From contig JAAPAO010000024.1 in NCBI GenBank assembly GCA_013115145.1, positions 1 through 64,000 on the forward strand: 64,000 bases of DNA, written 5' to 3'. Below the pieces are notes generated by a model that saw only the letters and a list, made by a program, of their open reading frames with translations, searched no databases and was not told the DNA's origin. The position numbers and the translations under genes were made by a program. Origin of the DNA: Perkinsus chesapeaki ATCC PRA-425. Taxonomy: Eukaryota > Protista > Perkinsozoa. This document shows, piece after piece, positions 9,546 through 52,043 of the stretch. The number at the start of each line of letters is the position of its first letter. The stretch's first letter is position 1.

Positions 9546-9760
9546 ATGTTGTATTATTCTATATTATTGAAGATGATAATTCAGCTCCTAGCCGGTCCAT
9601 TGTAGACGGCGGCCCTTTGACAGTGAGTTGTTATTATTGTTGTTATTGCTACTGCCCATCTTGACTAAGTTCATGATTAAGCACGAGATCCATTGTGCCA
9701 GCCATTTGTCGGGTTCATTAATTAATGGCTGCTGTTTGGATGTTTTATTCTGTCAGTTAA

Positions 9761-12808: not shown

Positions 12809-13265
12809 GGAGACAAAGGCTTCTGCTGCTTGTAGTAGTAGAAGGGGGGTTTACCTTCATTGAGATGATATTCAATAATATAGTGTGAATCCTAAGTGAT
12901 AATAATTATGATATTATAGTTTACTACTTGTTGAGTTTCTTGAAGTGGCAGGGGAGGGGGATGGCTTAATAGTACATTACCAATACGCCTACCATTAGTA
13001 ATAATGATTGTACGAATACATCCTACCTGTCATAGGGCCATAGTACAATAGATACTCCTTATCATTGGACTGCCTTTTACTGTATTATTATATCCTTTAG
13101 TTCGGCCCTTCGATTAGCTGTATGATGTTAATGTATTACGATGTATGATCAGTCCTATGTTGCTCTAGTTTTATTCTTGATGCCAAGTAATGGTATTCTC
13201 TTTACAAGATCTTATACCATCCTCCTCTCCTCGAAGCCTTCATGCTAGTTCTAGGCTACCACCAA

Positions 13266-14886
13266 TGGAGATAGATACTGCGGAGGAGGCATTATTAAGA
13301 GCATCATCACAGTAGTAAGATAGTATCATAGATAGCCATGCTGCTTTCAGGAGCGATATAGAAGGCGGTGTGGCTGCGGCTAGGGTGCATTTAATACCGG
13401 ATAATGAAGATGAGGAGGAGAGCAGCAGCGGCTGGTGGGCTGCAGCTATGTAATACGGGGGGGTGTTATGGGTAGACTCTTCATTATTGCATTTCATGTA
13501 GTAGAGGAGGGGCCAGTAACGGTACTTCAAGGCAGCCCAGTCTTGGGCTCCTGGAGAATCCATTGGGAAATATATCAGACGTTGGTTAGCTTAGCGTATC
13601 TTTATAATATAAGGAATATATGAACCATATTAACAACTTCCTATAGAGCCAGTCAGTTTTTATTATATAATGTTCAACTGGGATAATGGCAAAGTTGTCG
13701 CTGATTCCTTTACGATGCGACTTTAACGGTGACTTGTGCCGCTACTTAATCTCCTGTCGTAGTATACTACGACAGGACGGTATGCACATTCCTACTAGTA
13801 GGAATGTGCATACGATCCTTTCATAGGCTGCCATTGTATGATTGATTTTGTCTTTAGATTCAAGCGTTCAATACCATTAGTTTTTCGTCCTCCTACTTGG
13901 TACTTTGGTATAGTACTACCAGTTTTTTATATGGGCTATGCCTCGGCGGCCAGTGTTCATATGGGCAGCAATCCCAAAGAGTATTACTACTACCATCCCT
14001 CCTACTACTACTAGATTTATTAGGATATCCCCACATGCTTTCGATGCTCTATTATCGCTCTTACTGGGTGTGGGCCTGTATTCGGCAGGGAAGATAAAAG
14101 ATAGGCTTAACACAGTCAGCACTTGGCTGTTGTTCGGTCTATTCGCTACTGTAATAAAGTATAACCCCCCTATGCGTCCTATGCCCCCTTCAGTTGAGTA
14201 CCGTATCATGCACACTTTTCCAAGAGATAGTCGGCACTCGTATGACCCTATCATTGAAGAGTATAACCCATTGGAGGCTGCTACAGTGGATAGCTGCTAC
14301 CATACTATCATCCGCTGTAGTGTGGTGTCTCTGGCTTCATGTAGTAACATGCCACATTAGCCAAGGCATTCCTCTTATTGCAGGTACTATTTGCCATTCG
14401 TGGCCGATATCTAGCACAGTTCATAGTAGCCGTTACAGGGGCATTTATAGCAATTGTAATATTACCCTACTTACCCCTCTTAACACCCCCCCCTATCAGA
14501 CCTTTTTAACACTTGTAGCCGAGCCGACATCAGACGGGCTCCACCTTCATCATTGGTTCACTGCATATCTGATGGCTATGATGTAAGCTCCTTCTTTCCC
14601 TTGCACCTATGTGGTGCATCGCTCCGCTTTTTTTAGTTGTCGTGAACCTAAGAGCCGCATAAGCTTCGCCTGGCAGTCCCTCTTTGTTGGTATATGGCTG
14701 CATGGCGCCAGCGTTTGGGGGGTAATAGCTATTATCCTTTCGTCTCCACAGCTGCTGTTTCTTTCCCTTCAGATTGACAGTATGTGGAATAAGCGTCCTC
14801 CTTGGCCGCCGTGGTCTGCTGTTACGAACAGTACGGCCCTCCCATTGCCAAGCCTTCATCATAATGCAAATTCTCTGTTCGTTTAG
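13266..14886 (+). CDS. Hypothetical multi-exon membrane protein with an LHLHHW motif
   Basis: Plausible exons with GT-AG boundaries, hydrophobic stretches, and DGLHLHHWFTAYLMAM..CREPKSRISF..GIWLHGASVWG. Boundaries are uncertain. Confidence 0.4.
13752..13813. repeat. Two adjacent perfect palindromes (26 bp and 34 bp)
   Basis: TCCTGTCGTAGTA|TACTACGACAGGA (13752-13777) and GTATGCACATTCCTACT|AGTAGGAATGTGCATAC (13780-13813). Confidence 0.95.
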
Positions 14887-15430
14887 TAAACTATTGCTGG
14901 ACTTACACGTTGACGAGCTACTTTTTTGTAACCTACTAGCACTAATCTTCATACCGTATTCGTCTTTTGTTAAGTTGAAATTAATATATTCCCTTTTAGT
15001 TCGGTAACAGTACTTCTCCTCCGTTACTGAGGTTGCTTCTATGACTTCAATATTCTCCCGTAAGAACCTTGAGTCCATGTCTCGAGGACTCGAGCAGGCC
15101 AGTCGCTTCATGCATGTAAGCATTCTGAATATGGCTTCTTATGTGGCTCGTTACACTCTAGGGGCATGTGTTAATCATTATGTCGTATTATCATTGTCCG
15201 TCGGAAATGTTGATATTACCCTTTGAAGGGTATCATTAAGTATGCTAACGCTGTCTTATTATCCACTGTACTGAGGTACACTACTCCACACTTTAAGGGG
15301 CAAAGGAGTGGTTTAATAGTATATACTATTGTGTAGTATGTGACGGTAGAGCTACTGTATTGCCTTTCATTACCAAAACTCCGCCTGTTGGTTCCTTATC
15401 CAATAGCCTCTTCGTTTTAGGATAAAGTAC

Positions 15431-17274: not shown

Positions 17275-17346
17275 TGGACGTGCCGGGAATTGAACCCGGG
17301 TCCTTCTGCATGCGAAGCAGACGTGATACCCCTACACCACACGCCC
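17275..17346 (-). tRNA. tRNA-Ala (anticodon CGC)
   Basis: GGGCGTG acceptor pairs with CACGTCC; anticodon arm TCTGC-TTCGCAT-GCAGA; T-arm CCGGG-TTCAATT-CCCGG; 72 nt. Confidence 0.96.
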
Positions 17347-19720: not shown

Positions 19721-19850
19721 GTGAGCCTCCTTGTATTGAACTTCCGCTGTGAAATCGATACCATTTTTTACAATTTTCTCCGGCGCGTTTCACTAGCGTT
19801 AGATCATGTGTCTTCCTCTCTGTGGATGAATTGTATCTGTTGGTGTTCAG
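19721..19850 (+). other. Putative 5'UTR intron or trans-splice acceptor region of EF2
   Basis: GTGAGC donor at 19721 and CAG at 19848-19850, 22 nt before the ATG. Confidence 0.45.
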
Positions 19851-19872
19851 TTCCAAAGGACCTCTTGCCAAA

Positions 19873-22389
19873 ATGCCGAACTTCACAGTGGAGGAGATGC
19901 GCGCGGCCATGGATGAGCCTCTATACATCCGTAACATGAGTGTCATTGCTCATGTTGATCACGGCAAGTCTACTCTTACCGATTCTCTTATCTGCCGTGC
20001 TGGTATTATCTCTGCCAAGGCTGCCGGTGATGCTCGTTTCACTGATACCCGTGCTGATGAGCAGGAACGTGGTGTGACCATCAAGTCCACTGGTGTCTCT
20101 CTGTATTACGAGTACAAGGCCGAAGATCAAGAGAAGGAGCATGGTTATCTTATTAACCTTATCGATTCACCCGGTCACGTTGATTTCTCATCTGAGGTTA
20201 CTGCTGCCCTTCGTGTCACTGATGGTGCTTTGGTTGTTGTTGATTGTATCGAGGGTACCGCTGTCCAGACTGAGACCGTCCTTCGTCAGGCTTTGAGTGA
20301 GAGGGTCAGACCCGTACTCTTCATGAATAAGGTTGATAGATGCATCTTAGAGTTGCAGATGGAGCCTGAGGAGATGTACGTCAACTTCCGTAAGTGCATT
20401 GAGGATGTCAACGTTATCATTGCCACCTATAACGATGAGCTCATGGGCGATTGCCAGGTCTATCCCGAGAAAGGCACCGTCGCCTTCGGTTCTGGTCTCC
20501 ACGGTTGGGCCTTCTCTATCGAGAGATTCGCTGATATGTACGCCTCCAAGTTTGGTGTCCCTAAGTCTAAGATGATGAAGCGTCTCTGGGGCGATACCTT
20601 CTTCAACGCTAAGAAGCACGCTTGGACTAACGTTGCTGAGCCCGCTGGTCATACTGGCAAGCCTCTTCCCCGTGCCTTCTGCCAGTTCATCATTGAGCCC
20701 ATTGTCAACCTTATCCGTGCCATCATGAACGATGACAAGGCTAAGTACGAGAAGATGCTGAAGTCTCTTAACATCACTCTTAAGGGTGATGATAAGCTTC
20801 TTACTGGCAAGCCTTTGATGAAGAGAGTTATGCAGACTTGGTTGCCTGCTGCTGATACTCTTCTGGCTATGATCGTTGATCACTTGCCCAGTCCCGTATT
20901 TGCTCAGAAGTATCGTGTTGAGAACCTTTACGAGGGTCCTATGGATGATGCTGCTGCCAACGCCATCCGTGCCTGTGATCCTAAGGGTCCCCTTATGATG
21001 TACATCTCTAAGATGGTTCCCACTTCTGATAAGGGTAGATTCTATGCTTTCGGTCGTGTATTCTCTGGTACTATTGCTACTGGTAAGAAGGTCCGTATCC
21101 AGGGACCTCATTACGTCCCTGGCTCCAAGGATGACTTGAACATCAAGAACATCCAGCGTACCGTTCTTATGATGGGTCGTTACGTCGAGCAGGTCTCTGA
21201 TGTCCCTTGCGGTAACACTTGCGCTTTGGTCGGTGTCGATCAGTACTTGCTCAAGTCTGGTACCATTACTGATATCCCTGATGCTCATAACATCGCCGAT
21301 ATGAAGTACTCTGTGTCCCCTGTCGTCCGTGTTGCCGTGAAGCCCAAGGATGGTAAGGATCTTCCTAAGCTTGTTGAGGGTCTCAAGAAGCTTTCCAAGT
21401 CCGATCCTCTTGTTGTCTGCACCACTGAGGAGTCTGGTGAGCATATCATTGCCGGTTGCGGTGAATTGCATGTTGAGATCTGCCTTAAGGATCTTAAGGA
21501 TGAGTATGCCCAGTGCGACTTCACTGTCTCTGATCCCGTTGTCTCCTACAGAGAGACTGTTACCACTACATCCTCTCAGACTGCTCTCGCCAAGTCCCCC
21601 AACAAGCATAACCGTTTGTTCGTGACTGCCGAGCCTCTTGGTGATGAGGTTAGTGCTGAGATCGAGAGCGGCAAGTTGGGTCCTCGTGTTGATCCTAAGG
21701 AGCGCGCTAAGGAGCTCGCTGAGAAGTACGACTGGGACATCAACGCCGCCCGTAAGATCTGGTGCTTCGGTCCCGAGACTGAGGGAGCTAACGTTGTTGT
21801 TGATGTGACCCAGGGTGTCCAGTATCTTAATGAGATTAAGGAGCACGTTAACTCCGCCTTCCAGTGGGCTTCTAAGGAGGGTCCTCTTTGCGAAGAGAAC
21901 ATGCGTGGTATTCGCTTCAACCTCCAGGATGTCACTTTGCATACTGATGCTATCCATCGTGGTGCTGGTCAGATTATGCCTGCTACTCGTCGTGTCTGCT
22001 TCGCTGCTGAGTTGCTTTCCGGTCCTGCTCTCCAGGAGCCTGTCTTCCTCTGCGAGATTACCGCTCCTAACGAGGCCATGTCCGGTATCTACAACGTTCT
22101 CACCATGCGTCGTGGTTGCGTGTTCGAGGAGAACCAGAAGGAGGGCACCCCTCTTCTTCAGCTCAAGGCCTACTTGCCCGTCTCTGAGTCATTCGGTTTC
22201 ACTGGTGCTCTTCGCCAGGCTACCTCTGGTCAAGCCTTCCCTCAATGCGTGTTCGATCACTGGGAGGCTCTTCCTGGTGACCCGATGCAGGATGGCTCTA
22301 AGGCCCAGGAGCTTGTCCTTAACATCCGTAAGCGCAAGAACATCAAGGTTGAGATGCCCGACTTGTCCAACTACTTGGATAAGCTTTAA
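19873..22389 (+). CDS. EEF2: Eukaryotic translation elongation factor 2 (838 aa, intronless)
   Basis: [56 protein letters not shown] diphthamide loop, [12 protein letters not shown] at 19873; strong codon bias. Confidence 0.99.
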
Positions 22390-24129: not shown

Positions 24130-24889
24130 TTAGAAGAAATATCGATGACTGCTCTTGAAGGGGAACTTCTCCACTTGGCGTAATATAGCAAGACCATGCC
24201 CCACAGTCTGTTCGATCTTGGGATGGTGATCAGGATATCTGACAACCTTATATAAGTAAAGCAAGCTCCGACCTTGGATACCTTTCTAAAAGATCTTCAT
24301 AAGCCTTTGTAACCAATGCGCATTGTTCAGGCATATTTTCTATCTCTTCCATAGCAGCTGCTCCAGAGCCCATAACACCTATTGGAAGCTACCTGGCCGA
24401 GATGCTATGTACTTTACCTTCGGCTCGACTGGAGAGCTCCATAAGCTCGTTAATGTGATCTCTTACATCTTCACAAGCATACATACAATTCATCGTCTCA
24501 TGAAGGTTACGTATGATAGGTCCGATCTCTTCATCACATAGGTAGGGTTCGCACATGTGGTCAACCTAATCTTGATAGCCATGGCTGGAGCAGTGGCAGT
24601 GGCAATGAACTTACCTTTTCAAGTTCAGATTCCCAGAAAGGGACGTCTAAAACAAGATTGAGGCCATCTTCCCAGTTGGTGCCAAGCACCTAAGGCTTGG
24701 TAGTGTATTAAGGAAGCAGCAGCTTACCTGATAGTATAGACTAGAGGCTCTTTGAAGGACCTCGGCCCTGCTGAACCTATCAACAGTTAGCATCGAGAAA
24801 TAACGATGCTGAGTGGTAATAAGAGGCATGGTAAGCCTAGTAGGCACCATACGACGTGAAATGGTACGGCAGAGTAGACTAGAGGCCAT
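24130..24889 (-). CDS. Probable mitochondrion-targeted protein (multi-exon)
   Basis: Arg/Ser-rich, acid-free presequence MASSLLCRTISRRMVPTRL..HRYFS. Spliced body DVPFWESELEKVDHMCEPYLCDEEIG..CMYACEDVRDHINELMELSSRAE..YPDHHPKIEQTVGHGLAILRQVEKFPFKSSHRYFF*. Confidence 0.7.
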
Positions 24890-25081
24890 CGCCTTAAGTT
24901 GTACTACTAAAAAGGATAAATAGGATAATAAAGGCTTATCAAAGAGGAACCAGAAAGTAAGCCTAGCTAATACCGTTGCATAACGTATAGAGCGAATATA
25001 GGAACAACTTGTTGATTACCGTCACTGTTAATAATCTATATCCCTAAAGATTGCGCTGGTCGAAGATGACATACCGAAAAT

Positions 25082-25097
25082 GCAACTCGCGCGCGCC
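25082..25097. promoter_or_regulatory. Candidate motif GCAACTCGCGCGCGCC in a head-to-head intergenic region
   Basis: 15/16 identical to 6919-6934. Confidence 0.4.
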
Positions 25098-25328
25098 ACG
25101 GTAATCGATTTATTTTGCGAGCAAGCAACATGACAATACTGTGCACTTTCCTTGCCGATGGCTATATGATTGGACAAATCATAATAGTACTGTCATAACA
25201 AACACACTTGGATTGTAGTCTCATCGCCTACATGTTACGGCATTTGTTATAAGTACTTCAATAAAGCAATTGCTTTGGTACGAAGGTTATTGAATAGTTT
25301 TTCTTCTCTTTTCCCCTACGTCCTTAGC

Positions 25329-26869
25329 ATGGCCTCTCCGGAGTACTATGAAGTACAGGCTTTATTGGACGTACGAAAGATATCGGGGAGAAAAGAAGAG
25401 TAATATTATTAATAATATAGTCCGTTAATCATCCATAGGTTCCTGGTTAAATGGAAGAACTCTCGTGAGCTTACATGGGAGCCATCTGGCAATATTGGGA
25501 CAGGTCTTAACGATGTGAAGGAGGTAAAGACGATCTTAGGAGTTATATACAGCAGTACTTGCGTGCTTAGTCGTTGAGGCAAAAGAAGGAACGGTTTAGA
25601 GGTAGAAAGATAAATGACCCTGTTACTGGACCAAAGGGGATCGTACGAAAGGTATTTCGGAGGAGAAGTCCAAGCCGGTCTAGTTGTAAGTGATGGTTGA
25701 TGATGGTGTGGTAAGAGCTGTTGTGGATGCTGTTTAGCATCGGGTGATGACTATACATCGCATAGCGACTCGAGTGATGATGAGGATTTAAAGGAAGAGG
25801 ATCAACAGGCTGGGAATGAGCAGTTTGTTAAAAGGTCTTATGAAGATGATAAAATAAAGGTAGTAATAGGCAGTATAGGAATAATATACATGGATTATCA
25901 ACAATACATTGAAGAACAATCCTAAGGTGGTGGATAGATGTTAATATTTCATTAACCCAATTCTTATATGGGGGCGTGTATAGGAATATATGCAAGAGAC
26001 AGTATAATGTAGAGTAATACCAAGGTGTACGTATAGTGGTATTGGGCGCCAAATCACTATTAGAGAAGTTGGTGTTATATGTAGGGCTATCAACCAACAT
26101 CATCTGATACAGCTGCTCGTGATATGAATAACCGTTCTCTGCCGCCTCGACCAATACCAGTGGCAAGGTTTAGAGGAGGGCTATTTGGTAATATAGGAAA
26201 TGTCGGTATGAGCCGGTTAAAGTGCATGTATTGGCATTAGGTATGGTGGATGATATGAAACAAGGTGCTGTATTTAGAATAGCTAATACGGCAGGTGTAC
26301 GGTGCATGCCGGAGAATAAGCTTAATAAGCTGTTCATTGAATATCTTTATGGCACTGATGCTGAGTCAACACCTAATACTGGATTACAATACGAGCAGGC
26401 TGTGGTGGATATTATGTGGGATATGGCCGCCAATTTACAGGGCTTAGAGGAGAATACGGTATCAGAGCTTAAGGAATGTCTATTGAGATTGGCGAGGCAA
26501 TTGAGGCTTCAACCGGCGATGACGTCTAAGATGCTCCAAGATTGGTTTAATAGGCAGCACCATCTCCACGCCACAGGATCGCATTCGTATAACCTTATGA
26601 ACGTATCTACACTACGTGCTATATGCTCCTGGATGGCAACCTTGAAGGAAGAGGATACCAAAATAGAGGATTTTAGTGATGATGGTAGCGTAGGCAACAT
26701 CGATGTTGATGTGTTGATGATGAGTGGGGCAAAGGATGGTACTAGCCGGGTTGGGTGGAGGGTTATAGAGGTTGAAGTTGAAGGTTTAGTTGATATGGAA
26801 GAGGAGGCAGTAGAGGATGGAGATGATCCTATTGTGGCAGAGTTCAGGAAAGCTCAGAGCGAGATGTAA
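25329..26869 (+). CDS. N-terminal chromodomain protein (multi-exon)
   Basis: MASPEYYEVQALLDVRKISGRKE|FLVKWKNSRELTWEPSGNI, an acidic linker, and a long last exon (26222-26869). Confidence 0.75.
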
Positions 26870-27179
26870 TGACTGATAGCAGGGGGAGCGGTATGAAAAT
26901 ATAACAGTAATAGATATTAGTTCATAGTACTATACAGCGTAGTGGAATGGTGGGTTTGTAGCGCGCGGTATCATCTTCAATCGGGTGGTGAGGTTATTCG
27001 ATGATACAGATTAGTATAATGTATTGCAAAGGAACTAGTATGGAGGATTTAAAAGTCATCATCATCATCATTGGGGTTTAAAATACATTAGGGAGTATGT
27101 TTATAGAAAAGTATGTAGTGGAATGTTATATAAGGAAATAGGCTGTATATGATATGTAATATTATATCGATTCGTTCTA

Positions 27180-30100
27180 GGTTCGGTGACACAGAGGATA
27201 CTGATGAAGGTGATATATGTACACTAATACACCTGGTTTATGCTGATAAGAATCCTACCAAATTATCAGAAGTAATATATTATATAGGTTATAGTATTAT
27301 TATTATTATTACTACTTTAGATGCCTGGATTAATAGCTAAGTATTCGGCTACATTGAAAGCATTGTATGAAAGTATATGTAAAAAATATGACGTTGATTG
27401 TAATAAAGGGATGGGGAGATGGGAGGGGTGAATAAACCATGGTCAATGTGTATAGTTTATAGAGAGTGGCATTGCCTCGTCAAGATGCGAACATGAACTT
27501 GTGGGGGCATGACTAATAGGTGGCAGTTAGATGTCTGAACAACTTCTAATAGCAATTAGTTGGTCCCGCAAAGTTACTCAGAGTGTGGTGGTGTGGTATG
27601 ACTATAGTCTGTGCTAAGAAGGAATATCTTGTGGGGATCGTCATCTTTGGGTGGTCTTGGTTTTAGGTGCCGACTTTGCCACAAAGTCCAATATAAAGAA
27701 CTACAAGACAATGGAGGAGTTTGCTGCGTATTGCCTATCAAGTGTAGGAGTACAATAATTCAAAGGCTTATCCTGATACTCAGGCCCGCTCACTCTATGC
27801 CACATATAACCCGGCAAAGCTTGGAGAGATAGAGGAGATACTAGCTAAGAATGCTAATCAGGAGGCACAGGTGGTGGCGGCAATACGGGGGAAGTATGAT
27901 GAAGGGCAAGGCTGCAGGCCTGGTAGGGATAACCTTTTGAGAGGAATTATAAGGTAGTGCTGTAGGTACATATTATCCTCCAAGTTCACCAGAATATGGT
28001 ATAATGGAGCTTATTAGGGAGGTGCTGACTGTATATAATCCTGATATGTTAAGTAAGGTGTCGATATGAGGTATGGTGGGTTACTGCTGCTGTTAGGGTC
28101 CATTGAACATACTGTATACACTCAGTATCGGTCTAGGGAGCTGTATGTGTACTTGGCAGTGTGTGATAAGTATGGGGTAACAATAGATGAAGAAAGACTG
28201 GTAGTGTCGGATGCCGGGATCGAACCTGCGTGGATCAATGGGATGGAATTTAGGCAAGTGTTGTTGATACATATCGGGAGAGGCAAAAGACTCAAAGACA
28301 AGAGCAAGTCTTTAATGTTGTCAAGGAGATATATAAGACCTATAATCGAGGCAAAGTGAAGGATGTACGTTAAGGAAACGCAAGATTCGGCAAGATTGCA
28401 AGATGTCCGACTATTCAGATCCATCGGTTAGTGAGCAAGTTCTCTCGGTCTGCCTCGTCCGAGTTGGAGCTAATACAGTCGGTATGTAATAAATTCAAAG
28501 TGCCATTGCATGTAAAGGTGGATATCATATGTAAGGACGAGGGACGCAGGTTCGAACCCCGGCGAGGGTATTTTAAATAATGTCAGCCCGTATGCTTGAT
28601 CCTGGTGCATTGGATGTGACTTGGCATAGTAAGTTCCAGAAGGTTATTGAGAAGAGTGAGCTGGCTATGCATGTAATAGTTGTATAATAGAGGGATTGGG
28701 TTATAGAGGATGCGTAGGTGTGGGGGTTAATAGAGATGGAGATGTCCAGTAATATGGACTCACATTTGGTATCGCAACCACCACCACGACTGAGTGGTGA
28801 GGATGCAGCTATGCTGACACTTGATAGACTCTCTGGAGAGGAGCAATGGATGACGGCGGAAATGTTGGTAGGAAAAGGTCGTGAGTTCGATCCCTGGGTA
28901 GGGCATTTATTCAGATAAGAGGAAAAGGTGGTATGATGAATAATGAGGTTATTATGAGAGACCTGCTTGATCAGAAGGGTAAGCCTTCCCCCTTTCCCCC
29001 TCATCCGGTAGTATCCTTTCAGTTCACGAGCTTGGCATTAATAAGCACCCATCACAGCTGCGATACCGCATAACACAGCAGGAGGCTGAGAGTGTTGAAT
29101 GGGATGCGTTCTGGGTGGCTGAGGCGCCACGTCTTAGCTGCACACTTTCTGTAATAGTGTCTGCTTCTGTTGTGGTAGGCTATATACTCCTCGTTCAGAT
29201 GAACTCAGTGGCTCCACCTGTTCCCTCTGCAGTTGGATATAGACCACAGAGGTTATGGCTAAGTCTGCAGGATATATTGCAATGGATACATCATATACGA
29301 CAACAGTATCAAGTCGCAGCAGACGAATTAGCTCAGAGCGTATTGCAGAAGGGCGGCGCAGAGGACGGTCCGGTAGTACCCGGGTCCGATCCCTGCACCT
29401 GACGTTTTAACCGCAATTCGTAGGTCGTCCAGCCCCCACTAACAGCCAAGAGGGAGCAGCCGACACAGCCGTTGCTCTCTTGTAATGTTGCCCTGGTTAG
29501 CCCCAAGCTGGCTGTGTTCGCCGGCGACTATAGGACATTGATCATTGATGAGTGAGAGGACCCTGGTTCAATCCCCGGTGGTGGCATTTTAGTTTCTTAG
29601 GTATCCTGAGTGCAGCCTTTATCGTCAGCAGAACCATGTATGGTTTTTACCAGAGGGAAGTCGAAGGACCGAAATAATCGACAAGGTAATAGCTTTAGAG
29701 GTGTTGGAAGCTTCAATGGTGAGTTTCAGCTTCGAGCCACCTGTGCAGCATGGCCTAGATGGCTGAGGCATGGGGGAGCTGTTGTAATTGATGTGGATAG
29801 GGTACACTTTATAGGAGGACTTAGAAGGAAGGCTATGTAATAAAGGGAAGGATAAGAAGGGTAGGGTATATCATTATATATAATGTACTGGTATTACTGT
29901 AGCATATCGTAATAATATACCTTATTAATAGCCTGGATACAATACACATTAATACGGTATAATAATTAACACAGTAATTATATAGTATGTATAGAGATGT
30001 GAGGTGGGTATAAAGGGGAACTAACAATACCTTGCTTTAAGAAGATACCTGATTGATTTATAACAGCGTTTAATAGATTATATGTAGGTACCGTGAGGGT

Positions 30101-33100
30101 ATAAAGCAGATAACAAAGCTAATAGGGGAAGAGGCAGGAGGCTCAGGTGGGCTGCTTATTAGAGAGGCCCTGTCTCGGTGGTGTAGAGTATAGTGTTCAG
30201 TCCGTATTCCACGCTATATGTTATCATTGCCGTTGGGAGCACTACAGCCACAGTTGCAGGAACTGGTATCTGATTATGATGATCATGAGAGCCAGGATGA
30301 CTATGGGGAAAGCGATCCTGAGGTTAGGAGGAGAAATGCGGGACGTGAGGTTCGAACCTGCGTGGTTGCTGCAGGTCCCAACAGAGCTTATTAGACCACT
30401 GAGGTTATCTAGGCAACAGATGAGGGATGCCTACATACAGGGAGCACTATGTCTTAACTGTGATGATATAACACATAAACCGGCCGACTGTGGAGTGAGG
30501 CGGAAGGTAGCTACTACCTTCGATCACTGGGGCTGCTGTTGTGGTGGTGATGCTAAGTGGCTGCTTAGGTGTGTTGGAACTGTCATGGTGCTCATCAGGG
30601 CCATACCTGTACAACGAGATGCAGGTAGGTGGAGGATAGATGGCTAGGTGGGGGGCATTGATGGGTGTGGTAGATTCTGCCAGTGTAACCACAGTGCATT
30701 TGTGCTGTTGGAGTGTGTTAAGAGGGGAGGAAGAAGGGCGCAGGAGTGGGCTAAGAACAGGCATTATCAGGAACAATTCCAGCTTAATAGAACGTAATGA
30801 AGGGAGGAGATAGTCACGCGCCATAAAATTATGTGTAGGTATCTTGACGTTGAAACCGCTATTAATAATGCGGAGGCGGCTGGGAAGAGGGAATGGAGTG
30901 ATGAGATAGTTGAGATGGTTCGGATATTGTAGGTCGATGAGTTGATGGAAATGTGGTATTAATAAATCCGAAGGTATAATGCTGGGCAATGGCTGCCTAA
31001 TGATTGGAAGGAGCATTTTGAAAGGCTTCTGTCTGATACTGGCAAGGGTGAGGATAGTGGGCCTGCTGCTGCTGTGTCGGCCGCCGCCGACCAGGTAGGG
31101 TTGTTATATTGGATAGTAGTATAGGTTAATGTTAGGCATCTGTTGCTGATAATGATACTGGCTCATCTGGACCAGTGAAGCCGGTAATGTGGACGGTTTG
31201 GGATAGGGTTAAGGAGGCCTCACTTTGATGACTTTGAGTGGCATTGTTATTATTAAGCTAGATATTCATAGATGCAGTAGTTGAAATACTCGACACCTAT
31301 TTAAACCTAAACTATCATAGGGCAGGATCATATAAATGAGTCCCTTCTCTCCGTTGTTCGAAATAAATGGGATAGAGTCTCGATATCATTTTCCTTTGTC
31401 ATAGAGAGAATTTGGGTATTTGATTTACTGTACTGCTGCTGCTGCAGATATTGCCGATAAAGCCACCACCACTGCTACCGGACCAGAAGTATAAATGGAT
31501 AGAAAGGATATTCCTGGATGATCTGTTGGGCGCTGGGATGCTGGGGAGAGATGCTGTACGAGCTATTGTGGGGGCTAGAGGTAATAGTAGTAGATAGTAG
31601 GAGGTAGGGGAGAGGTGGGGCAGGTCAGAATCACAAGGAGATGGAATCGGCGACACAGAGTAGGATATACTTCAGAGGGATGGGCATGAAGGATTCCAGT
31701 ATTGGTAATAGGGCTAGTGGGCTGAGGTGTGGTGCAGGTAGGCTGTGGTAGGTGGGGGAGCTGATGAGATACCTGATCTAAGCCATTTCGATACCGAGGC
31801 ACGGATACATGTCTTGGTTAAATGTAATATAATAGTATGAGTGTATTGAAGGATATTATTATTAATAGGTGATCAGCCGCAACAGGCTAAGGCAGTTAGG
31901 TCAATGTTGATAAGGATAATACGTAGCATTGAGACAGACCACCAAGGACAAGGTCATGGGTAGGGTTAGGGTGGTAATGTACGGTATTGAGGTATCTTAT
32001 GTGTAGCGTATAGAAAAGAAATATAATATTTTATTTTGCGATAAGCGCGTATGTAGGATATGAAAATGTTCATGGGTATTTCGCTCTAAGATGATGGTAT
32101 CATCCCATTGGGATGGTGAGTTGGTTTTAAGTATATTAGATTGCTCTATAGGAGTACTATTGACGATGATCCATAATGGTTAATATTATTAAGTCAGTAG
32201 AGCTCCGAGCTTAGCTTGGGCAAATAGCCCTAGTGTCAGTAGTACAACAGCAGTACCCTATTAACATTAAATGACTTATGATAGCGAAGGCTCTTCACAC
32301 ATGACCCCACAGCATGCCACCTTCCGTACAGACCTGGTTATGCCCGATGTAGGTCCTTACCACCATTGTGTGATGCATTCCATTGGCTGCTTGACAGCTC
32401 TAGATATCAGAGTGGTATGGGTAAAAGAGAGGATATGGATAGATACTCTGGTGGGGCTGATGATGCAGCTAGACCTGTAAGCAGTATGATGGCAGGAGGG
32501 TGGGGATAGGGTTATTGTTAGTTGCCTGGTGGAGGAGTACAAGGATTGGAGATAACATTAGGAGATAATCGAGATAATGAGGTTAATGCATTGCAGCACT
32601 GGCTGCATGCACAGGGCATTGAGGCTAAGGTAGGGGATGGCTGGTAGGGGAAGGGTATAATGTTTGGTGCTGTTGTTGGCAGACTGATTCTAATCTTACA
32701 CGTATATTAATACCATCGACACGTAAGATAGAGGCATCAGTTGCTTTGAAGGAAAAAGAACAACCACAAGAATTTGATAATAAAGTGGATGAAAAGAAAC
32801 AAATTATAAGTAGGTTATTAACTCACCTGTTTAGTATCTTCACGGTTGAAGCTTAGATTCCCCAGCTGTTCGGCATGCAGTGTATTCTGCCTTATTCCAG
32901 CTATTTTCCTTATGGCCTGCTCAACCTCCAGCTGTCAGTGGAGTGTAAGTAGTATGAATACTAAAGCCTACCGTAGAATCAACTATTGTATCGTTCAATA
33001 GTCTTTTATATAGCACCCACCACCGCCACCATCGTTGTTTATAATAATAGCAGCCTTACACCATTAATACCTTTTATTACGCGTTTGCATCATCGCAGGC

Positions 33101-35547
33101 ATTATATGATTACTATTATACCTGATCTGGTTTAGGTACTGGTTTGAGCCATGGCAGCTTGAACCGATTGGTCTTATTGGTCGCATAAGAGCCACCGCAC
33201 CAGTTGATGAGCCCATTGAAGGTAATAGCTTTGTATGTAGATGTGTTGCAGTATTGCTGCTATTAGTAGATGATCGATTCTGGATGGATGTTGGCCAAAG
33301 GTGTCGGTTGTCATTAAAGGGTGCTGAGGAGGTGGCTACACTGCTAGAGGCCATGGAGGAGCTACCTGATAATGTTGATAAGGAGATGTGTGTTGAGGTA
33401 AGCTCTGTGGGGTGGTGTCTACTTATCATCTCTTATATTGCCCACTTCAGATTCTGAGGAGCTTTGTGGGGTCAGTACAGTGTGCTGCTAAAGACCATCG
33501 ATTGCTATTGTAATGATATGATGATGAAGTAGGGTATGTTAGTAATGTGTATGGGGTTAGGTATCTGCGGTATCCATGGGCCATGGTACATACCACTGGT
33601 GATGATGAGTTGACTGCACTTAATCTATTCCCTAGGAATGTATCAACACATCTTATTAATAAGGAAATAAGGGAGACTGGAAGGCTAGGTAGGCAAGTAT
33701 GTTGAGGGATGAAGGAAAAGAGGAGGCTTATGTAGGGACAAATGCTGGGGATGTCACTGCGCTAAAGACAAATATTAAAAAGCAAAGTGTCAAGAGCGGG
33801 GATCGACCCGGGGACCACCTGCTTGAAAGGCTATCGCCTGATAGAGTGCCGGAGATGGAACCACCGTAGGGGGGTATCTTAGGTCGGTTTTGGTCATATG
33901 TGTACAGTTACATTGGATATTCTGTTGAATGGCTACTACCCGATGATGTGTTATTGCATACCGCAGCAACAGCAGCAGCGGCAGGGCATGCAGGTAAGGG
34001 ATGATTAGAGGAAGGAACGGTATGAGTTATTTTGGTGCAGCTGCAGCTACTAATGAGCAATGTGATGACGAGGTCGAGGCTATATCTGTTCAGAGGTAGA
34101 GTAACTACTTAGGAAGTTATCACCAATCCCGCTCAGGCCAACACAGCCGGCAGCTGCAGGTCGATCGCCGAGCCCAGCGGAGCCAAAGCCACCAACTGCT
34201 ATAAAGGGAGAGATTGGACAGGATGCTGTCATAGTGGATGATAACGCCTCAGATGTGGTTAGTTGAATGATAGAGGAGATTGTAGAGGACATTCCTGTCT
34301 CCTCAGACACAAAGTCAACGTGATGCTTTTATGGCCATGCCTGTTACAGAGCTACGTGATAGGCTACGTGCACAGGGACTACCGGTAATGAAGAGGTAAC
34401 TGATATAATAAAAACACTGTGCATTAGGTAACTGGACGGAAGACCGATTTAGTCGATCGTTTATTGAAGAAGCCAGTGACATCAACAGCTGGAGCTGCTG
34501 CAAAGAAGGGGGCTCAGGGCCCAGCCATGTAGGGGGACGCCTCGTCGTTGATGTATAGTCATTACTGCTCAGTTATAAATGCCGAGTGGAGCTACCTGTA
34601 CAACTTATGGGCTGGCATGAGCTTCGGAATAACCTCTGCGGTGATCGTAATGCTCACTTCGATCATGTCCACTCACAGTGCCCTGGTACAAAGCTGACAC
34701 TGGCTGGCAGTCAGAGTGCGGTAGGCCTATTATGTGATACTAGTTGAGGAAGGAGCGGTATGAGCAGGCACTGCAGGGATCGGCTAGGCTACATGTATTG
34801 GTTACAACCAATGGCTTAGAGGCTGACTATAAAAGAGCAAAGGATCTTGTCGTCGACCTAGCTAAGGCTGTTGCAGAGGTACATTTGCTCTATATAGTGT
34901 GATGATTATGTTACTATTATTTAGCACGGTGCGGAGGTTATGCTAGGGGACCTGTCACCAACCCAACTGCAGAGTATATTGGCTGAGGTAGGGATGGGCA
35001 TATTATAGATCTTATGGGAGTAATATTACAGGTTAAAATAGTGGAGCTCACCACATCGGCAGCTCCAGCAGCATCTAAGGCATCAGGAGGGGAAGGGGGT
35101 GAAGGAGGCAGCAGTGCATCGGGACAAGGTACAGTGGAGTGGTAGGTGGATAGGCTACGTGGGCACTGTCGTCAGGTGGTGGAGCTGGTGCCTCCTCGGC
35201 ATTTAATAGGCTATTTGGGGCACTTCAAGCGGCAGCAGCAAAGGGCAATCAAACTGCTACTACTGGAGGGCCTCCCCCTCCATCATCAACTGGTGATCCT
35301 AGTGGCCGACAAGCTGCATCTTATGAGGACCTGTAGTCCCATACCACTACTACCTTCTACTACTGTTTCAACGTTACCATCTTTAATAGCATCATCCTTG
35401 AGTTTTTGTCACCATTGGCCACAGCAGAAGGGTTCAGGTTGCGGCTTGGTAATCGCTTATATAAATATACTTGGCCATCTTGACACTAGTGCCTTTCGGA
35501 GATATGTGTCCCCATTAGGGGGTCGCATGTGGCATAGACGAAGATAA
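27180..35547 (+). CDS. Large, highly fragmented hypothetical gene (possibly more than one) with three YNPxKL...KY helical repeats and a CCHC zinc knuckle
   Basis: Exons spliced by hand: LYATYNPAKLGEIEEILAKN..RGKY; VLTVYNPDMLSK..VCDKY; IYKTYNRGKVKDIHRLVSKF..VCNKF; CLNCDDITHKPADC (about 30447-30488). Ends and gene number are uncertain. Confidence 0.55.
28205..28233 (-). pseudogene. tRNA 3'-half fragment inside intron 28201-28253
   Basis: Minus strand CCACGCAGG-TTCGATC-CCGGC-ATCCGAC-A. Removing the 53-nt GT..AG intron joins EERL to ASVVDTY..KTYNRGKVKD in frame. Confidence 0.7.
28541..28574 (+). pseudogene. tRNA 3'-half fragment plus TTTT inside intron 28531-28586
   Basis: GGGAC-GCAGG-TTCGAAC-CCCGG-CGAGGGT-A-TTTT. 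Of the candidate donors, the phase-1 GTAAGG keeps the next exon open. Confidence 0.72.
28876..28908 (+). pseudogene. tRNA 3'-half fragment (Met-like 5' part) inside intron 28868-28914
   Basis: AGGTC-GTGAG-TTCGATC-CCTGG-GTAGGGC-A-TTT. The unspliced frame stops at 28916; the spliced frame reads EML-IRGKGGMMNNEV. Confidence 0.75.
29379..29408 (+). pseudogene. tRNA 3'-half fragment (Ser-like end) inside intron 29373-29423
   Basis: CCCGGG-TCCGATC-CCTGC-ACCTGAC-G-TTTT. Confidence 0.62.
29556..29590 (+). pseudogene. tRNA 3'-half fragment (Phe-like) inside intron 29552-29600
   Basis: GAGGAC-CCTGG-TTCAATC-CCCGG-TGGTGGC-A-TTTT. An in-frame TGA at 29553 requires splicing here. Confidence 0.75.
30334..30365 (-). 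pseudogene. tRNA 3'-half fragment inside probable intron 30323-30374
   Basis: Minus strand CCACGCAGG-TTCGAAC-CTCAC-GTCCCGC-A-TTT. Splicing gives DDYGESDPE-VPTELIRP. Confidence 0.65.
33788..33829 (-). pseudogene. Weaker tRNA 3'-half fragment, possible intron 33787-33829
   Basis: Minus strand TTTCAAGCAGGTGGTC-CCCGG-GTCGATC-CCCGC-TCTTGAC-A. An unspliced exon reading is also possible. Confidence 0.45.
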
Positions 35548-35842
35548 TGTAGAGCCACGTACCTGAGCAACGGAGTCTCGATGAAATCTTGAGGATGTCT
35601 TATAGGCCTCTACACCGTGTTTGGACAGGCGGACGAAATAGCCACATAGAGATGTATTCTTTGGGGCTAGAAAATTCTACCCAATGCAGGTGAGATGCAA
35701 AGTAAATTTTGATAGCAAATGTTCCTCGAACGAAAGAGGATGGCAAATGCATTCCTCCGAAGTGTAACACAGGATCGTCCTGAATGACTCCGGAATAGCC
35801 CAGCATATTTGTTTACACCACAAAGGTAGTTTGATAGATTGT

Positions 35843-38207
35843 ATGTCACCATTAGCCACCGCTGAGCCTAGTAGGGGTGATACCCAGGACGCAGAGGAGC
35901 TTGTTAGCTCTCAAGCAGGTTGGTATTGGGACTGGGATTTCCCTAAGGTCCATCCCTTCCTCAACGAGGTGAATATTTGCAGTAGTACGAGCAGTAATGC
36001 TGTCATGATCAGTCACATCATGAGGCGCGTAAAATGGTTAGGGCGTTCATAGTTGATAATATTATACCGTATTTGCCACAGTGGGAGGAGGAGGGAAAGT
36101 ACCCGAGGGATCTACACCGTAAAGCCTATGCAGCAGGAGTGTAGGTGAGTGGGAATGTGGAGGTGTGATATAGTGTTAGATACGCTGCCTTATGGCCGAC
36201 ATCAATGGGAGGGACACCACCACCATTGTGTGAAGGAAATAAGACTAGGCCTGGTAAGAAGAGGCTCTGGTAGTTGGCTCCAAGGACGTGGTGTTATTTG
36301 ACTTTTTAAATTGGGCGGAATGCTCTGGAGTGCGTCGGTAGGAAATTAGTTCATCCAAGAGAGTGTTGACAAGACGGTAAAAGGCATTAGTAAAGAAGCA
36401 AGAGCTTTGACCAGTATACCCTGACTGTGATAAAGGGGGAAATAGTGGCCTCGAAACAATTGCAGGGGGCACTGCGATTAGCTTACTTACAGCACATTCT
36501 GCACCATTCGCTCAGGCCCGCATAAGGTCGATATTTGGCATGATTTGGTTATAACCGATGAGTTGGCTAACTGTGGTGCCGGTGGTGTAATAGCCAGTTG
36601 TTTTGTTAGTCTGGCAATCGGCCTCCCTCCCCTCATTGCTGGTGAGCAGCCTTATATACCTTATAAATCAGAGTGTACCCCCCTTTTAGGTGGACTGGCT
36701 GGAGGATCACAGCTAACCTCACGATTGGTGAGGGAGGTTGTGCAAGGTGAGAAGATACTAGCCTTGGCTGTTACAGAGCCCTATGCTGGAAGTGATGTGG
36801 CAAATATCCAGACGAAGGCAGTGCTACAGGTATGTTAGCGTGGTGTGCGAGAATACGGTATGGCTTCTTGTTATTAGCCTGATGGGCAGCATTATATTGT
36901 TAATGGTGTGAAGACGTTCATTACCTCGGGGCCATGGGCGGACTACTTCACAACAGCGGTGGGCTGCTTTTCTGTGGTATGTGTTTTACATATCTTAGTA
37001 AGGTGCATATTGAAGGGGATAGTGGAGTGTCTCTGCTTTTAATAGACAGGAGCTTACCAGGGGTGTCAACTACAAGGTTAGCCACACAGGGATGGAAGAC
37101 TAGTGGTACGGCACGTATTACTTTTGATGATGTTAAGGTAGGCAACAGCAGCAGTGGACAGGTGGTAGAAAGATAATTGAATTTGAGAATATTAGTTGAA
37201 TATAGATCATGTACAGTATAGTCTCTTGTTCACTCCTACTACACCTTGTGCCATTGGCTAATATTAGGTACCATGTGATATGCTTATTGGTCGTCGAGGC
37301 CATGGATTTAAAGCTATTATGTAACTACCTGTTATTGCCACTGTTTATCAATGACATCTGCCTTAGGCACAATTTTAATCATGAACGTCTAATGTTATCT
37401 ATCCAGTCTACTCGTTATGCTAGGATATGTATGGAGGATGCTATACGGTATGCTAAGTCTAGAAGAACTTTTGGTAAACGTTTAATAGATCACCAGGTGA
37501 GATTATCAAAAGCTTTTTTGCGTGATAGTGGCTCCATTCGCACTCGTGCGTGCTGACGCCGTATTAAACAGTACTAAACATCTAATCATTTGTCCCTTTT
37601 GGAAAACTACATTTAATATAGTATATTAAAGGCTCGGTTGAGAGTCACGTTTAGAAGATTTTTGTAAAGAGTTTGCGAGAATTATCTGCATCTTGATGAT
37701 ATCGTTGCTCACCTGTTCCTGAAGCACCTCTTATTCGTGTGTCACTGCGTAGGTGATACGACATAAGATATCAGAGATGGCTCGATCAGTCCTAGCCACA
37801 CACTATTATATAGAGAACATCGCCATACAGTGGCCCAAGTAAGGCCAGCTGAACCTTTCCTTACTACCGCTATGTTGACATAGATCAACACAGCTCGAGC
37901 TGGCTGGTAAGGTGGCCCTTTTGAAAGTGCAAGCCACTAAGACCTTTGAGTTCTGCGCTAGGGAGGCATCCCAGGTAGACGCTGATACTTTAATAATCGC
38001 TACGCTAGTGTTATCTTTAGATTCTTGGTGGGCGTAGTTACCTGCAGGGATCGGGCCCTGGAGCTAGAGTAGAGCGGTTATACCGCGAAGTGAGGGTAAA
38101 TGCTATTGGTGGAGGTTCGGAGGAGGTAAGACAGTAACCAGTTTGCGTGGTGCTCTTTCTGCTATCAGATCATGCTGGATCTTGCTGCACGGCAAGCCCG
38201 ACTTTAG
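35843..38207 (+). CDS. Acyl-CoA dehydrogenase ending in PTS1-like ARL (multi-exon)
   Basis: LALAVTEPYAGSDVA, YIVNGVKTFITSG, FNHERL, RRTFGKRLIDHQVIRHKI, QILGG..VERLYREVRVNAIGGGSEEIMLDLAARQARL*. Confidence 0.92.
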
Positions 38208-48817: not shown

Positions 48818-51043
48818 CTAGTGCGCTTGTACCCATTGTTCCAGGGTTGTTGTATGGAGATTCTGGCTCAAGCTCCCTTGCTGTGTTATTCTTAGGCGTT
48901 CATCAATTGATACCGCGACAGGTGCTCGCCCACTGAGTGCACACTGTACACGTACAACACGTGTACAGCTCACGTGTGGTTCTAACCCTGCTGGACCAAT
49001 GCCGAGGAAACGAGTGGGTTTGGTCGAAGCATTCTCACAAAAACCTTCATATATGATACATTTCATATGAATTTAACAGATGTTTGTCAAGGCAAGAATT
49101 CCGGGATCGGAAGGTTCCAACACAGAAATGGCGGACAGACTGGCGAAAGAGTCCAAGTGTGTATGCGTTGAAGTGTTTAATGTGAAATGTAGATTTAACA
49201 CGTACGTAGATTCTCCATAGATAACGATGTAGATGGAGATCATCATATGGCAATTCTTCTTTCCAGAAGGAGATTGTCCACTGTATAGTTCAAAATCTGG
49301 ACCATACAGTGGACGACAACAAATGTGATGGGCCCGCGGAATCACAAGAAGTTTTTATTCCTCGCTCCTCTATGAGTGAAGTCTGTGATCAACAGCTCTC
49401 TCATGCTCTAGGATACATTGTAATAAACTCATTTGACGCAGATGTCCCTGGTCTTAACTACTGCGTGTCAGCTGAGAGAAGCGTCGCTTACGATCTTTCT
49501 CACCACTAGCAGGTAAACAGCTCTAACGCCGTACTAGATGAACTAAACAAATCTTAAGTTAACAGAGACAGAGACTAGTTCAATGTGCCATCATCTGTGA
49601 CGATCAGTGTGGAATCGCATGTACAGGATTGAACTGCTCTACCGTATCGTTGTGCATCATCATACTCACAAAGCGTCTCCCACCAGATGGTGCCTATCAA
49701 CTATAAGTACCACTGAACCGGCCATAACTTACACTCGTCTAAAGGTGCTGCACTGCAGACTGTATTGGTATCATCTATTGGTGTTGAGTGCGGCATAGTT
49801 TCAGAGTTACCCAGGAAGCCTTCGAATCTACAACTGTAAGCTCTACGACGTTACGTATCTCACTTACCGGCATAGTAGACATGGGAGTACTTGTGGAGGC
49901 GCGTCCTTACTAGCTCTTTGAGAGTCTGAATTCTGATGGTATCTGATCACTTGATCTGTAGCCATTATCCTCCAACTATCGGCTCACAATGCTATTAGTT
50001 CCTTCACACAAAGTATGTCATCATCTATCCCCGCCACTTCCCTCTCACAACTAGACGTCGTCCTTTGGCCGATAGAACCAGCGGTACTCGTGCCGCTTTT
50101 TTTCGTTTTCCATTCAGCAGTTGATGCTTTAGGGCTCGGGTAAGTGGTTTTGAGTCCGAGTCTGCGAGAATCTCCCTACTGCGGCGAACGGAGGTGGCCG
50201 CACCTTTCCATGAGAGGATCTTGCCTTGGTTTAGAGAAATGCTTCACCTGAGCAACAGTACCATGGTGGAGCGCCTTCGGTCAGGACTTTACCTTCCTCT
50301 TCCATTCCATTAATTCTTTACACTTTACTAACTGCTCGTATGCCGCTGTTAGCTGTCGCTTATCGAACAGGAGGGTTGCTCGCTCATAGGAGTATTTCAC
50401 CGAATCAGGATACCGTACCAAATTCGCCGCTGTTTCCTGAGTTGAACACATCCAGGCCTAACCTTATAGTAACCGTGCATCCCCACTGACTTGGTCTTTA
50501 TCTCTGAATGATGCTGACACTGTTTCGATGGCATGCATATTATGAAGTGCGCAACCGAGTGGTAAGCCAAACTCCTCCAGCAGCTCCCCAGCTAGGTAGC
50601 TCTCTGATAGCGCCAAAGATCCCTTTCCGGCATCCCAATACCTAAGGTATGCCTTTCTCACTGTTGGGGGCACAGACAACTCCTACCGTATGGCTAGATT
50701 GAAATGCCCGACTATCTTTCGTATTGGTACAACTATCGGTACAGGACCCTGCACCCGCCCTTCAGCCTCACGTAGCTTCATAAACACTTCCTCATCTCGA
50801 GGTCGGATACGGAAGCATTCCCGCCACTCGAAAGCCTGGAGCGCTATGTGTTGCAGTGCAGCTCTTGAGCCGACTCACGGCCAGTCGCCACTCCTGGTTC
50901 TTCTCGTGCTCTGAAGCTGCCTGTTTATGTGCAATAAACCTATCGTATGCTGTTAACTGTCTTTTGCCTATTGGTGCTGCATTTGTACTGGACATTAATA
51001 AATTCTGGATGAGTAGCAATAACGGAAGGTCCCACACAACCAT
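48818..51043 (-). mobile_element. Possible decayed gag/retropepsin-like remnant
   Basis: Long reading frames broken by stops and frameshifts without intron signals; LDSFASLSAIS resembles the retropepsin LDSGA.xSxIS motif; no RT or integrase motifs seen. Confidence 0.25.
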
Positions 51044-51197: not shown

Positions 51198-52043
51198 CTA
51201 TAAAGACGATAATTGTGATTCATGTGGCGTCCTCTGATTGATCGTCCTCACTATTGCCGATATCTCCCTAAGGTATGCATGGGTCAGGTCATATTAGTCA
51301 TTTATATTAGCCTCACTTAAATCTAGGATGGTCCTTAGTTCTCATCATATCAAATAGGATACTCTCACTGGTAGTAAGCACTGCTCCTGCTCGAGCTAAC
51401 CTATCAATGGCTGTTGTACGGTCGAGAAGTCTACTGGAGGAGACACCATCAGTCACCAGAAACCTGATCGATCCTGGTGAGGGAAATCTGGAGGACAGCC
51501 TACAGTGTAGCATCGGGGCGATCAGTGAGGATGTCCAATGCAGTCTGCATGATACAGACATGACCTTCAATGCCACACAGTATGAATTGGTCACGGCTGG
51601 GGGGACACTTATGTGACACTTTCAATTGAGTAACTCACTCTCGACAATGTGTAGATAGATGCTTCTTAACATCCTCGGTCATCATCGAGAAGAGGGTTTT
51701 AGGGAATATTGGACATCCAGTAGTGTCCAGACCCGCGACCGACTTTCCGAGCTTCTCAGGATATTGTTCTGAATAAGAATTGAACCCAAAGGGAACTAAG
51801 ACGATTACACCCACCTGTGATGACTACAGGGAAATCGAGGACCTTCGAGGCTGCGATCAAGCTGTTGGCGGTTTGAACGATATGAGGCTGATAACAGGGT
51901 AATAACTATCTAAACTTAAGATTATCTACCATTCTCTGTATTGTCTTGGCAAACACTTCTTGAAGGTCACATACTAACAGAACCGCCCTGTTGGCTGATG
52001 CACGGCTCAGAGCACCACTGGCGGCTGCTGCTGCTGCTGACAT
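51198..52043 (-). CDS. Isochorismatase-domain (ISOC-like) protein, copy 1, ends SSL (multi-exon)
   Basis: AVLLVCDLQEVF, EQYPEKLG, FPKTLFSM, VTDGVSSSRLLDRTTAIDRLARAGAVLTTSESILFDMMRTKDHPRFK-EISAIV..QLSSL*. Confidence 0.88.

Follow-up and report, generated by a model that had tools for sequence, protein, structure and literature searches.

Isolated B boxes (GGTTCGANNCC), with neither an A box nor a functional tRNA, are known as extra-TFIIIC (ETC) sites in Saccharomyces and chromosome-organizing clamp (COC) sites in S. pombe; they are mostly intergenic and few, and the box is conserved between related species while its surroundings diverge. These sites are thought to organise chromatin rather than make RNA (PMC3395662). 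tRNA-derived short interspersed elements (SINEs; mammalian B2, MIR, and Alu) bring the promoter boxes of RNA polymerase III (Pol III) into introns of genes that RNA polymerase II (Pol II) transcribes, where they are able to recruit TFIIIC and to affect the host gene (PMC3744447). Introners, described in Micromonas, Aureococcus, dinoflagellates, and fungi, are recognisable families that make whole introns, many per genome. The 'invasive intronic elements' of Amoebophrya are related to them (PMC7789003). Finally, in the split and permuted tRNA genes of Nanoarchaeum and Cyanidioschyzon, 3' halves stand apart from 5' halves (PMC3978253, PMC3218864). Such halves are expressed and joined into working tRNAs, and their stems match. 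Here, we analyze a series of six short introns, each containing a module that resembles the tail of a tRNA gene, and one exonic site with the same box in a protein-coding gene of Perkinsus chesapeaki, a parasite of oysters and clams. The gene lies in a stretch of 64,000 nt (strain ATCC PRA-425, contig JAAPAO010000024.1, positions 1 to 64,000), hereafter the window.

The locus resembles each of these systems in part. It shares with ETC and COC sites the isolated boxes and their conservation amid diverged surroundings; unlike them, the Perkinsus boxes are clustered, fill 47-56-nt introns (and occupy one exon) of a Pol II gene, and still have an acceptor strand, a discriminator, and a terminator beside them, TFIIIC binding being putative here. 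As with introners, a recognisable family makes up whole introns, whereas introners consist of near-identical recent copies with presence/absence differences and often with repeats or target duplications. The Perkinsus modules are old, orthologous in five of six cases in P. olseni, and alike only as a generic tRNA-tail consensus, and their conserved part is a promoter motif. SINEs are retroposed elements of 100-300 nt with A and B boxes and a tail, located in long introns; the modules comprise only ~35 nt of a tRNA-gene 3' end with its terminator, and they constitute the intron. In contrast to split tRNA genes, 5' halves are lacking, the stems contain mismatches, and the modules stand in both orientations within a protein-coding gene. 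We found no published description of tRNA-like Perkinsus introns in the literature on introns, tRNA fragments, and the B box or TFIIIC. The locus contributes a map of one gene in two species, an exonic copy probably under selection, explicit losses, and statistics for the terminator offset, and it joins three fields that usually stand apart: where intron sequence comes from, what becomes of tRNA gene fragments, and extra-TFIIIC sites.

The reading of the whole towards which we lean, if only slightly, is that the modules are ancient remnants of tRNA genes whose B box is under selection at the DNA level, with TFIIIC docking as the leading candidate for its role. The coordinates of the modules and of the other features of the window are given in Table 1.

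Table 1. Modules, cores, and other features of the window. Positions are those of the window; L004 denotes the P. olseni gene locus, and L001 and L002 denote P. marinus scaffolds.
Feature	Position	Strand	Length	Description
Intron 1	28201..28253	+	53 nt	Antisense module; orthologue L004 12671-12720
Intron 1 core, GGTTCGATCCC	28216-28226	-		11/11 identical in P. olseni
Intron 2	28531..28586	+	56 nt	Sense module; orthologue L004 12995-13052
Intron 2 core, GGTTCGAACCC	28549-28559	+		10/11 in P. olseni
Intron 3	28868..28914	+	47 nt	Sense module; orthologue L004 13352-13400
Intron 3 core, AGTTCGATCCC	28884-28894	+		Followed by A and TTTATT
Intron 4	29373..29423	+	51 nt	Sense module; orthologue L004 13885-13940
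Intron 4 core, GGTCCGATCCC	29383-29393	+		Followed by G and TTTT; 10/11 in P. olseni
Intron 5	29552..29600	+	49 nt	Sense module; orthologue L004 14069-14115
Intron 5 core, GGTTCAATCCC	29565-29575	+		Followed by A and TTTT; 10/11 in P. olseni
Intron 6	30323..30374	+	52 nt	Antisense module; exons on each side conserved in P. olseni DNA
Intron 6 core, GGTTCGAACC, palindromic	30348-30359			Trailer TTTCTCC on minus strand
Segment 7 (exonic)	33787..33829		43 nt	Exon 33736-33865 encodes ...KQSVKSGDRPGDHLLERLSPDRVPEMEP, as in P. olseni
Segment 7 B-box-like site, GGGTCGATCCC	33799-33809	-
DUF6827 gene intron	24379..24417	-	39 nt	Decayed module remnant (three-species alignment)
tRNA-Ala(CGC)	17275-17346	-		ARAGORN; 96% identical to syntenic P. 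marinus copy L001 7535-7606
Host gene	25329..35333	+	~10 kb	tblastn of KAF4696751.1 (P0126); ~54 introns, mostly 40-60 nt
ATP-dependent RNA helicase A	9968-12808			946-aa open reading frame; 100% identical to NCBI P. chesapeaki protein
EF2	19822-22389			97% identical to P. marinus EF2

A first-pass annotation of the window had listed seven segments as introns; all of them start with GT, end with AG, and have the lengths that it gave, as verified in the sequence. Comparison with the P. olseni orthologue upholds the intron status of segments 1-6, which are very probably real introns with conserved tRNA-tail modules, and not that of segment 7, which lies inside a coding exon whose translation matches P. 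olseni residue for residue. Introns 1-5 match annotated P. olseni introns to the base, the P. olseni protein is continuous across each of their junctions, and the spliced peptides equal that protein. Splicing of introns 1, 2, 3, and 5 is indeed needed to keep the frame, as their lengths (53, 56, 47, and 49 nt) shift it, and intron 6 (52 nt) shifts it likewise; the length of intron 4 (51 nt) is divisible by three but the intron contains an in-frame TGA, so its removal is needed as well.

Intron 6 sits within a 623-nt stretch (L004 14526-15148) that is annotated as a single intron in P. olseni. This stretch contains two strongly conserved coding blocks with third-position changes only (window 30201-30322 and 30375-30506), the first encoding ...SVRIPRYMLSLPLGALQPQLQELVSDYDDHESQDDYGESDPE and the second a CCHC zinc knuckle, ...CLNCDDITHKPADCGVRRK. 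The two blocks are in different frames (flanking-exon peptides ...DYDDHESQDDYGESDPE and PTELIRPLRLSRQQMRDA.IQGALCLNCDDITHKPADCGVRRK, with a frame shift by 1). Segment 6 is taken as a real intron because these conserved exons join in frame only after the 52 nt are removed. The P. olseni annotation thus misses two exons, and the annotated 1870-aa protein is therefore incomplete. More generally, conserved intron landmarks of this kind can be used to check and repair Perkinsus gene models.

In tRNAs, position 73 is 20 nt from T54, the T-loop is the TFIIIC B box, and Pol III terminators are T-runs. Each module consists of a B box, the rest of the T stem, a 7-nt acceptor strand, a purine discriminator, and in most cases a T-run. 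Read in tRNA orientation, all seven segments have a T-loop followed by 5 nt, 7 nt, and a purine at T54+19/20; the T-loops of segments 1-7 are, in order, TTCGATC, TTCGAAC, TTCGATC, TCCGATC, TTCAATC, TTCGAAC, and GTCGATC. The further layout reported in the first-pass annotation was reproduced, with TTT(T) following the purine in five of the seven segments, four sense (2-5) and three antisense (1, 6, and 7) orientations, and neither CCA nor a 5' half in any segment. The TTT starts exactly at T54+20 in five of the six intron modules (p ~1e-9, against a background in which TTT starts at ~1% of positions in 32 ordinary introns of the host gene). This coincidence points to tRNA genes with a Pol III terminator as the source, beyond a simple resemblance to the B box, and the lack of CCA points to tails derived from DNA and not from mature tRNA.

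All seven sites match the B box (tRNA positions 52-62) with at most one mismatch, and 7 of the 12 window sites within one mismatch of GGTTCGAWYCC belong to the host gene. The shorter motif GTTCRAWYC occurs 13 times in the window, compared with 2.96 +/- 1.87 in shuffled sequences, none of 100 shuffles reaching 13; all four plus-strand matches are located in introns 2, 3, 5, and 6. An alignment of the modules with the 3' half of tRNA-Ala(CGC) yields the joint consensus AAGGACCCGGGTTCGATCCCnGGnnnnGGCATTTT, and the module of intron 5 is the closest of all to the tail of the tRNA-Ala(CGC) of the window. Outside the core, the flanks of non-orthologous modules are ~48% alike. The tRNA 3' end of the antisense module in intron 1 adjoins the 5' splice site, and in intron 2 the discriminator A is followed by a TTTT that is present in both species.

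None of the modules is a tRNA now. The only tRNA found by ARAGORN in the window is tRNA-Ala(CGC), with none in the module region, and a search against Rfam (RF00005) gave no tRNA match even at E<=10, only sub-threshold snoRNA noise. Every T stem has at least one mismatch, and of the stem pairs free of the B box (three per module) 10/18 can pair by a hand count. Partial decay of stems that draw on a small GC-rich repertoire explains the mismatches better than chimeric halves that would complement each other from one intron to the next. The module introns fold no better than their own shuffles (z from -1.0 to +1.25).

Altogether, an origin of the modules from tRNA genes is likely. The first-pass annotation had proposed capture of tRNA 3' halves by an introner-like route; what remains of this proposal is that tRNA-gene tails stand in real spliceosomal introns, whereas recent or active introner-like capture is unsupported, because the elements are orthologous and old, with turnover. 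The modules are relics and not active introners. No target-site duplications were obvious by eye at the junctions, where no systematic search was made. Formation of the cluster by internal exon-intron duplication was rejected, the protein having no internal repeats and the modules differing in orientation. Source material is abundant, because Perkinsus has very many tRNA genes, with >500 copies of five tRNA types in P. marinus, and these genes are targets of Dada transposons (PMC3706591). In P. olseni, the T-arm and 3' end of tRNA-Ala(CGC) are found twice, ~160 bp apart (L004 ~1236 and 1395).

The five modules at orthologous positions in P. olseni must be older than the species split, and in them the 11-nt core has stayed nearly unchanged. 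Anchored on the core, the five shared modules are 94.5% identical between P. chesapeaki and P. olseni over its 11 nt (52/55 positions), whereas the flanks are 39-50% identical (16 nt upstream, 39%; 8 nt downstream, 45%). For comparison, the exons of the host gene are 74% and its ordinary introns 43% identical in nucleotide sequence (gap-free aligned columns). The five shared module introns are 62-70% identical with common words of 7-15 nt, including the 13-mer GGGATCGAACCTG in intron 1 and the 15-mer GAGTTCGATCCCTGG in intron 3, whereas ordinary introns share words of 3-8 nt only. As a control, 16 of 1050 11-nt windows of ordinary introns reach 10/11 identity; these 16 are confined to two places, one of them probably a missed exon. 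Columns that are invariant in all modules and the real tRNA are G53, T54, C56, A58, C61, and C62, the classical B-box determinants. Orthologous modules have the same orientation, the same place in the intron, and partly the same flanks. At six of the nine loci examined, the core has survived a divergence by which neutral intron sequence was scrambled. The core is probably under selection, and the B-box motif is probably still used, because it has hardly changed although the remainder of the introns is scrambled.

Two further features of these introns were observed. Modules 1 and 2 (cores at 28216-28226 and 28549-28559; L004 12686 and 13010), which have opposite orientations, are both flanked on the 5' side by ACGCAGG in the window and by ACCCAGG in P. 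olseni, a parallel difference that reflects either concerted change or coincidence. The ordinary intron 28365-28418 (L004 12832-12882) has a conserved repeated GCAAGAT, present three times in the window and twice in P. olseni, and is the sole non-module intron with windows at 10/11 identity.

The antisense sites bear on the level at which the core is constrained. In module 1, a perfect 11/11 B box lies on the non-transcribed strand in both species and the transcribed strand matches at 9/11; module 6 and the exonic site are antisense as well. The exonic site falls in the longest run of identical codons (8) of a 1855-codon alignment, in which codons for identical amino acids are otherwise identical in 45.5% of cases (p ~0.002 for this pre-specified site). 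Stem changes between the species are not compensatory. Given the antisense modules, the lack of conserved RNA structure, the exonic site in its run of identical codons, and the core retained by P. marinus and P. olseni in the DUF6827 intron, we favour a constraint that would act on double-stranded DNA, independently of intron context.

A second exonic B box was considered in the same way. The perfect box GGTTCGAATCC in a coding exon of the helicase gene (10679-10689, minus strand) is identical in P. olseni, and its P. marinus counterpart, GGTTCAAATCC, still fits the consensus; because its conservation across the three species does not significantly exceed the codon constraint, this site was rejected as a selected copy.

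Outside the host gene, the first-pass annotation had seen no such fragment in introns of the window, which is essentially correct, apart from the decayed remnant in the DUF6827 gene. At this intron, an intact antisense module adjoins the 5' splice site in P. olseni (L004 ~8826, GGATCGATCCC) and on both scaffolds of P. marinus (GGTTCGATCCC at L001 14635-14677), and the core has been lost from the window.

In the proposed explanation, the 3' ends of tRNA genes, from the end of the variable loop through the T arm, acceptor strand, and discriminator to the T-run, would have come to form almost the whole of short introns in either orientation, arriving by capture at DNA breaks or by insertion into existing introns. 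The B box (positions 52-62, GGTTCGAWYCC) would since have been held by purifying selection on double-stranded DNA. Like ETC sites in yeast, it could offer TFIIIC a place to dock independently of Pol III, and an array of 6-7 such sites within 5.6 kb of a Pol II gene may influence chromatin or the passage of Pol II without any RNA product. Docking is put forward as the most likely function because ETC sites are the closest known analogues; TFIIIC itself is named only tentatively as the reader of the core. The intragenic B-box array, given as an alternative in the first-pass annotation, fits the conservation data well.

Several observations weigh against this explanation. The core was lost in one lineage at three of the nine loci: the P. 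olseni counterpart of intron 6 has no core, the P. olseni module in L004 16513-16567 has no equivalent in the window orthologue at the same intron position (32477-32521), and the DUF6827 intron of the window lacks the core kept by P. marinus and P. olseni. The L004 16513-16567 module, which can still fold (z -2.6), may be younger. The T-run is present in five of six modules in the window versus one or two of five in P. olseni, and in the window it is kept better than neutral decay predicts, which a function of the B box only leaves unexplained. Of the TFIIIC subunits, only Tfc1 and Tfc4 are reported to be detectable in all eukaryotes (PMC1540719). The core is nearly palindromic (GGWTCGAWCC), so that some other DNA-binding factor acting as a dimer would suit it just as well. 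Protein searches gave no P. marinus orthologue, and the host gene is comparable in two species only. Two small (5-Mb) P. chesapeaki RNA runs, in which EF2 is present, have zero coverage of 28000-33900 and neither support nor contradict splicing.

The reader of the core might thus not be TFIIIC but another factor, such as a dimeric protein on the palindrome GGWTCGAWCC, with the tRNA tails as mere raw material. All seven sites, read on the transcribed strand, are within one base of GG(T/A)TCGA(A/T)CC, their orientation is mixed, and a B-box-binding TFIIIC subunit is undocumented for alveolates. We nevertheless consider such a reader unlikely: the positions that never vary coincide exactly with the B-box determinants G53, T54, C56, A58, and C61, which form an asymmetric set, T55 is kept in all sequences but one, and module 1 in both species matches the B box at 11/11 on one strand and 9/11 on the other.

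A role in the pre-mRNA, either as an aid to the splicing of such small introns or as a T-loop-like handle for some tRNA enzyme or other protein, e.g., a pseudouridine synthase recognising GUUCNANNC, would agree with modules that fill their introns and with their placement, the sense T-run lying 6-17 nt before the 3' splice site and the antisense tRNA end adjoining the 5' splice site. It is improbable in view of the three of seven copies that are antisense and conserved as such, the T stems mismatched in every copy, introns that fold no better than shuffles, interspecies changes that are not compensatory, and one conserved copy that is exonic. Moreover, a module occurs in only ~11% of the host-gene introns, and the remaining introns are of equal size.

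It is very improbable that selection is absent and that the cores were refreshed by gene conversion from tRNA genes or inserted independently into the same hot-spot introns. The >500 tRNA gene copies of P. marinus would supply donors, and both the parallel ACGCAGG/ACCCAGG difference in modules 1 and 2 and the P. olseni-only module that still folds are in line with such a process, but conversion tracts should restore T-stem pairing and the acceptor strand, which are still mismatched and diverged. Orthologous modules also agree in orientation, intron position, and part of their flanks, and a tract of 11-15 nt is very short for ectopic conversion. Chance or a compositional artefact, to which GC-rich, near-palindromic T-arm sequences lend themselves in that single matches do arise (e.g., GGGATCGGGCCC in the ACAD exon 38028-38094), is refuted by 13 matches clustered in one gene against 2.96 expected, by the T-run offset, and by conservation of the core between species.

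If B boxes held by selection on double-stranded DNA, our preferred reading, are bound, Perkinsus Pol II genes would contain dense arrays of Pol III-factor sites, and this culturable, transfectable parasite would be a tractable system for their effects on transcription, splicing, and chromatin. A wider generalisation is possible but doubtful, namely that hundreds of tRNA-gene tails in tiny introns, and occasionally in exons, form a selected genome-wide network of docking sites for Pol III factors in Pol II genes. Such a network would imply arrays in some genes, where chromatin would be organised or Pol II paced, and tRNA-gene fragments would be a major raw material of intron sequence in the Perkinsus lineage.

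The host gene is the orthologue of P. olseni KAF4696751.1 (1870 aa), the full-length member of the single cluster, from P. olseni, that was retrieved by HMMER with the open reading frame 26222-26869. In Pfam, KAF4696751.1 matches SAP, KH-I (KHDC4/BBP type), and, weakly, Chromo; with the CCHC zinc knuckle in the additional exon, the product is a KH/SAP/zinc-knuckle protein. The protein maps exactly onto the L004 DNA with 52 introns, nearly all of 45-60 nt, and 44 of them fall exactly on GT..AG segments of the window in the nucleotide alignment of both genes. Published Perkinsus introns span 39-1622 bp, and most of them are <100 bp (PMC3101222). The intron map used here is the P. olseni exon map projected onto the window; an ab initio intron model was dropped as over-fitted, with tiny exons and false introns. 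One ab initio call, 38028-38094, was rejected as an intron, since the three-species alignment identifies it as coding sequence of the acyl-CoA dehydrogenase (ACAD) gene.

Four other intron-like regions were noted. An annotated 34-nt P. olseni 'intron' (L004 16628-16661; window 32582-32614) is 92% identical between the species, with a shared 17-mer; it probably represents coding sequence, or else a conserved element, and not an ordinary intron. A conserved block within the P. olseni 'intron' 15310-15417 (window ~30730-30838) is probably a missed exon. On the minus strand, the GT..AG segments 51862-51906 (45 nt) and 49595-49642 (48 nt), both putative introns, contain the weak T-loop-like words GTTCAAACC and GTTCAATCC without the discriminator/T-run pattern, and the former has open frames of 90 and 34 codons on its two sides.

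In both P. chesapeaki and P. olseni, the host gene lies between the DUF6827 and ACAD genes. It is missing from between these genes on both P. marinus scaffolds, L001 and L002, where the syntenic gap is ~740 bp (window 24891-35916 versus L001 15145-15889, and L002). The helicase gene (window 9394-15051) is also absent from its syntenic place in P. marinus, and a 66%-identical copy is found on another scaffold (L005). Over positions 26000-38000, G strongly outnumbers C along the host gene's coding strand, with a GC skew of 0.14-0.36 per 2 kb, far above the remaining window.

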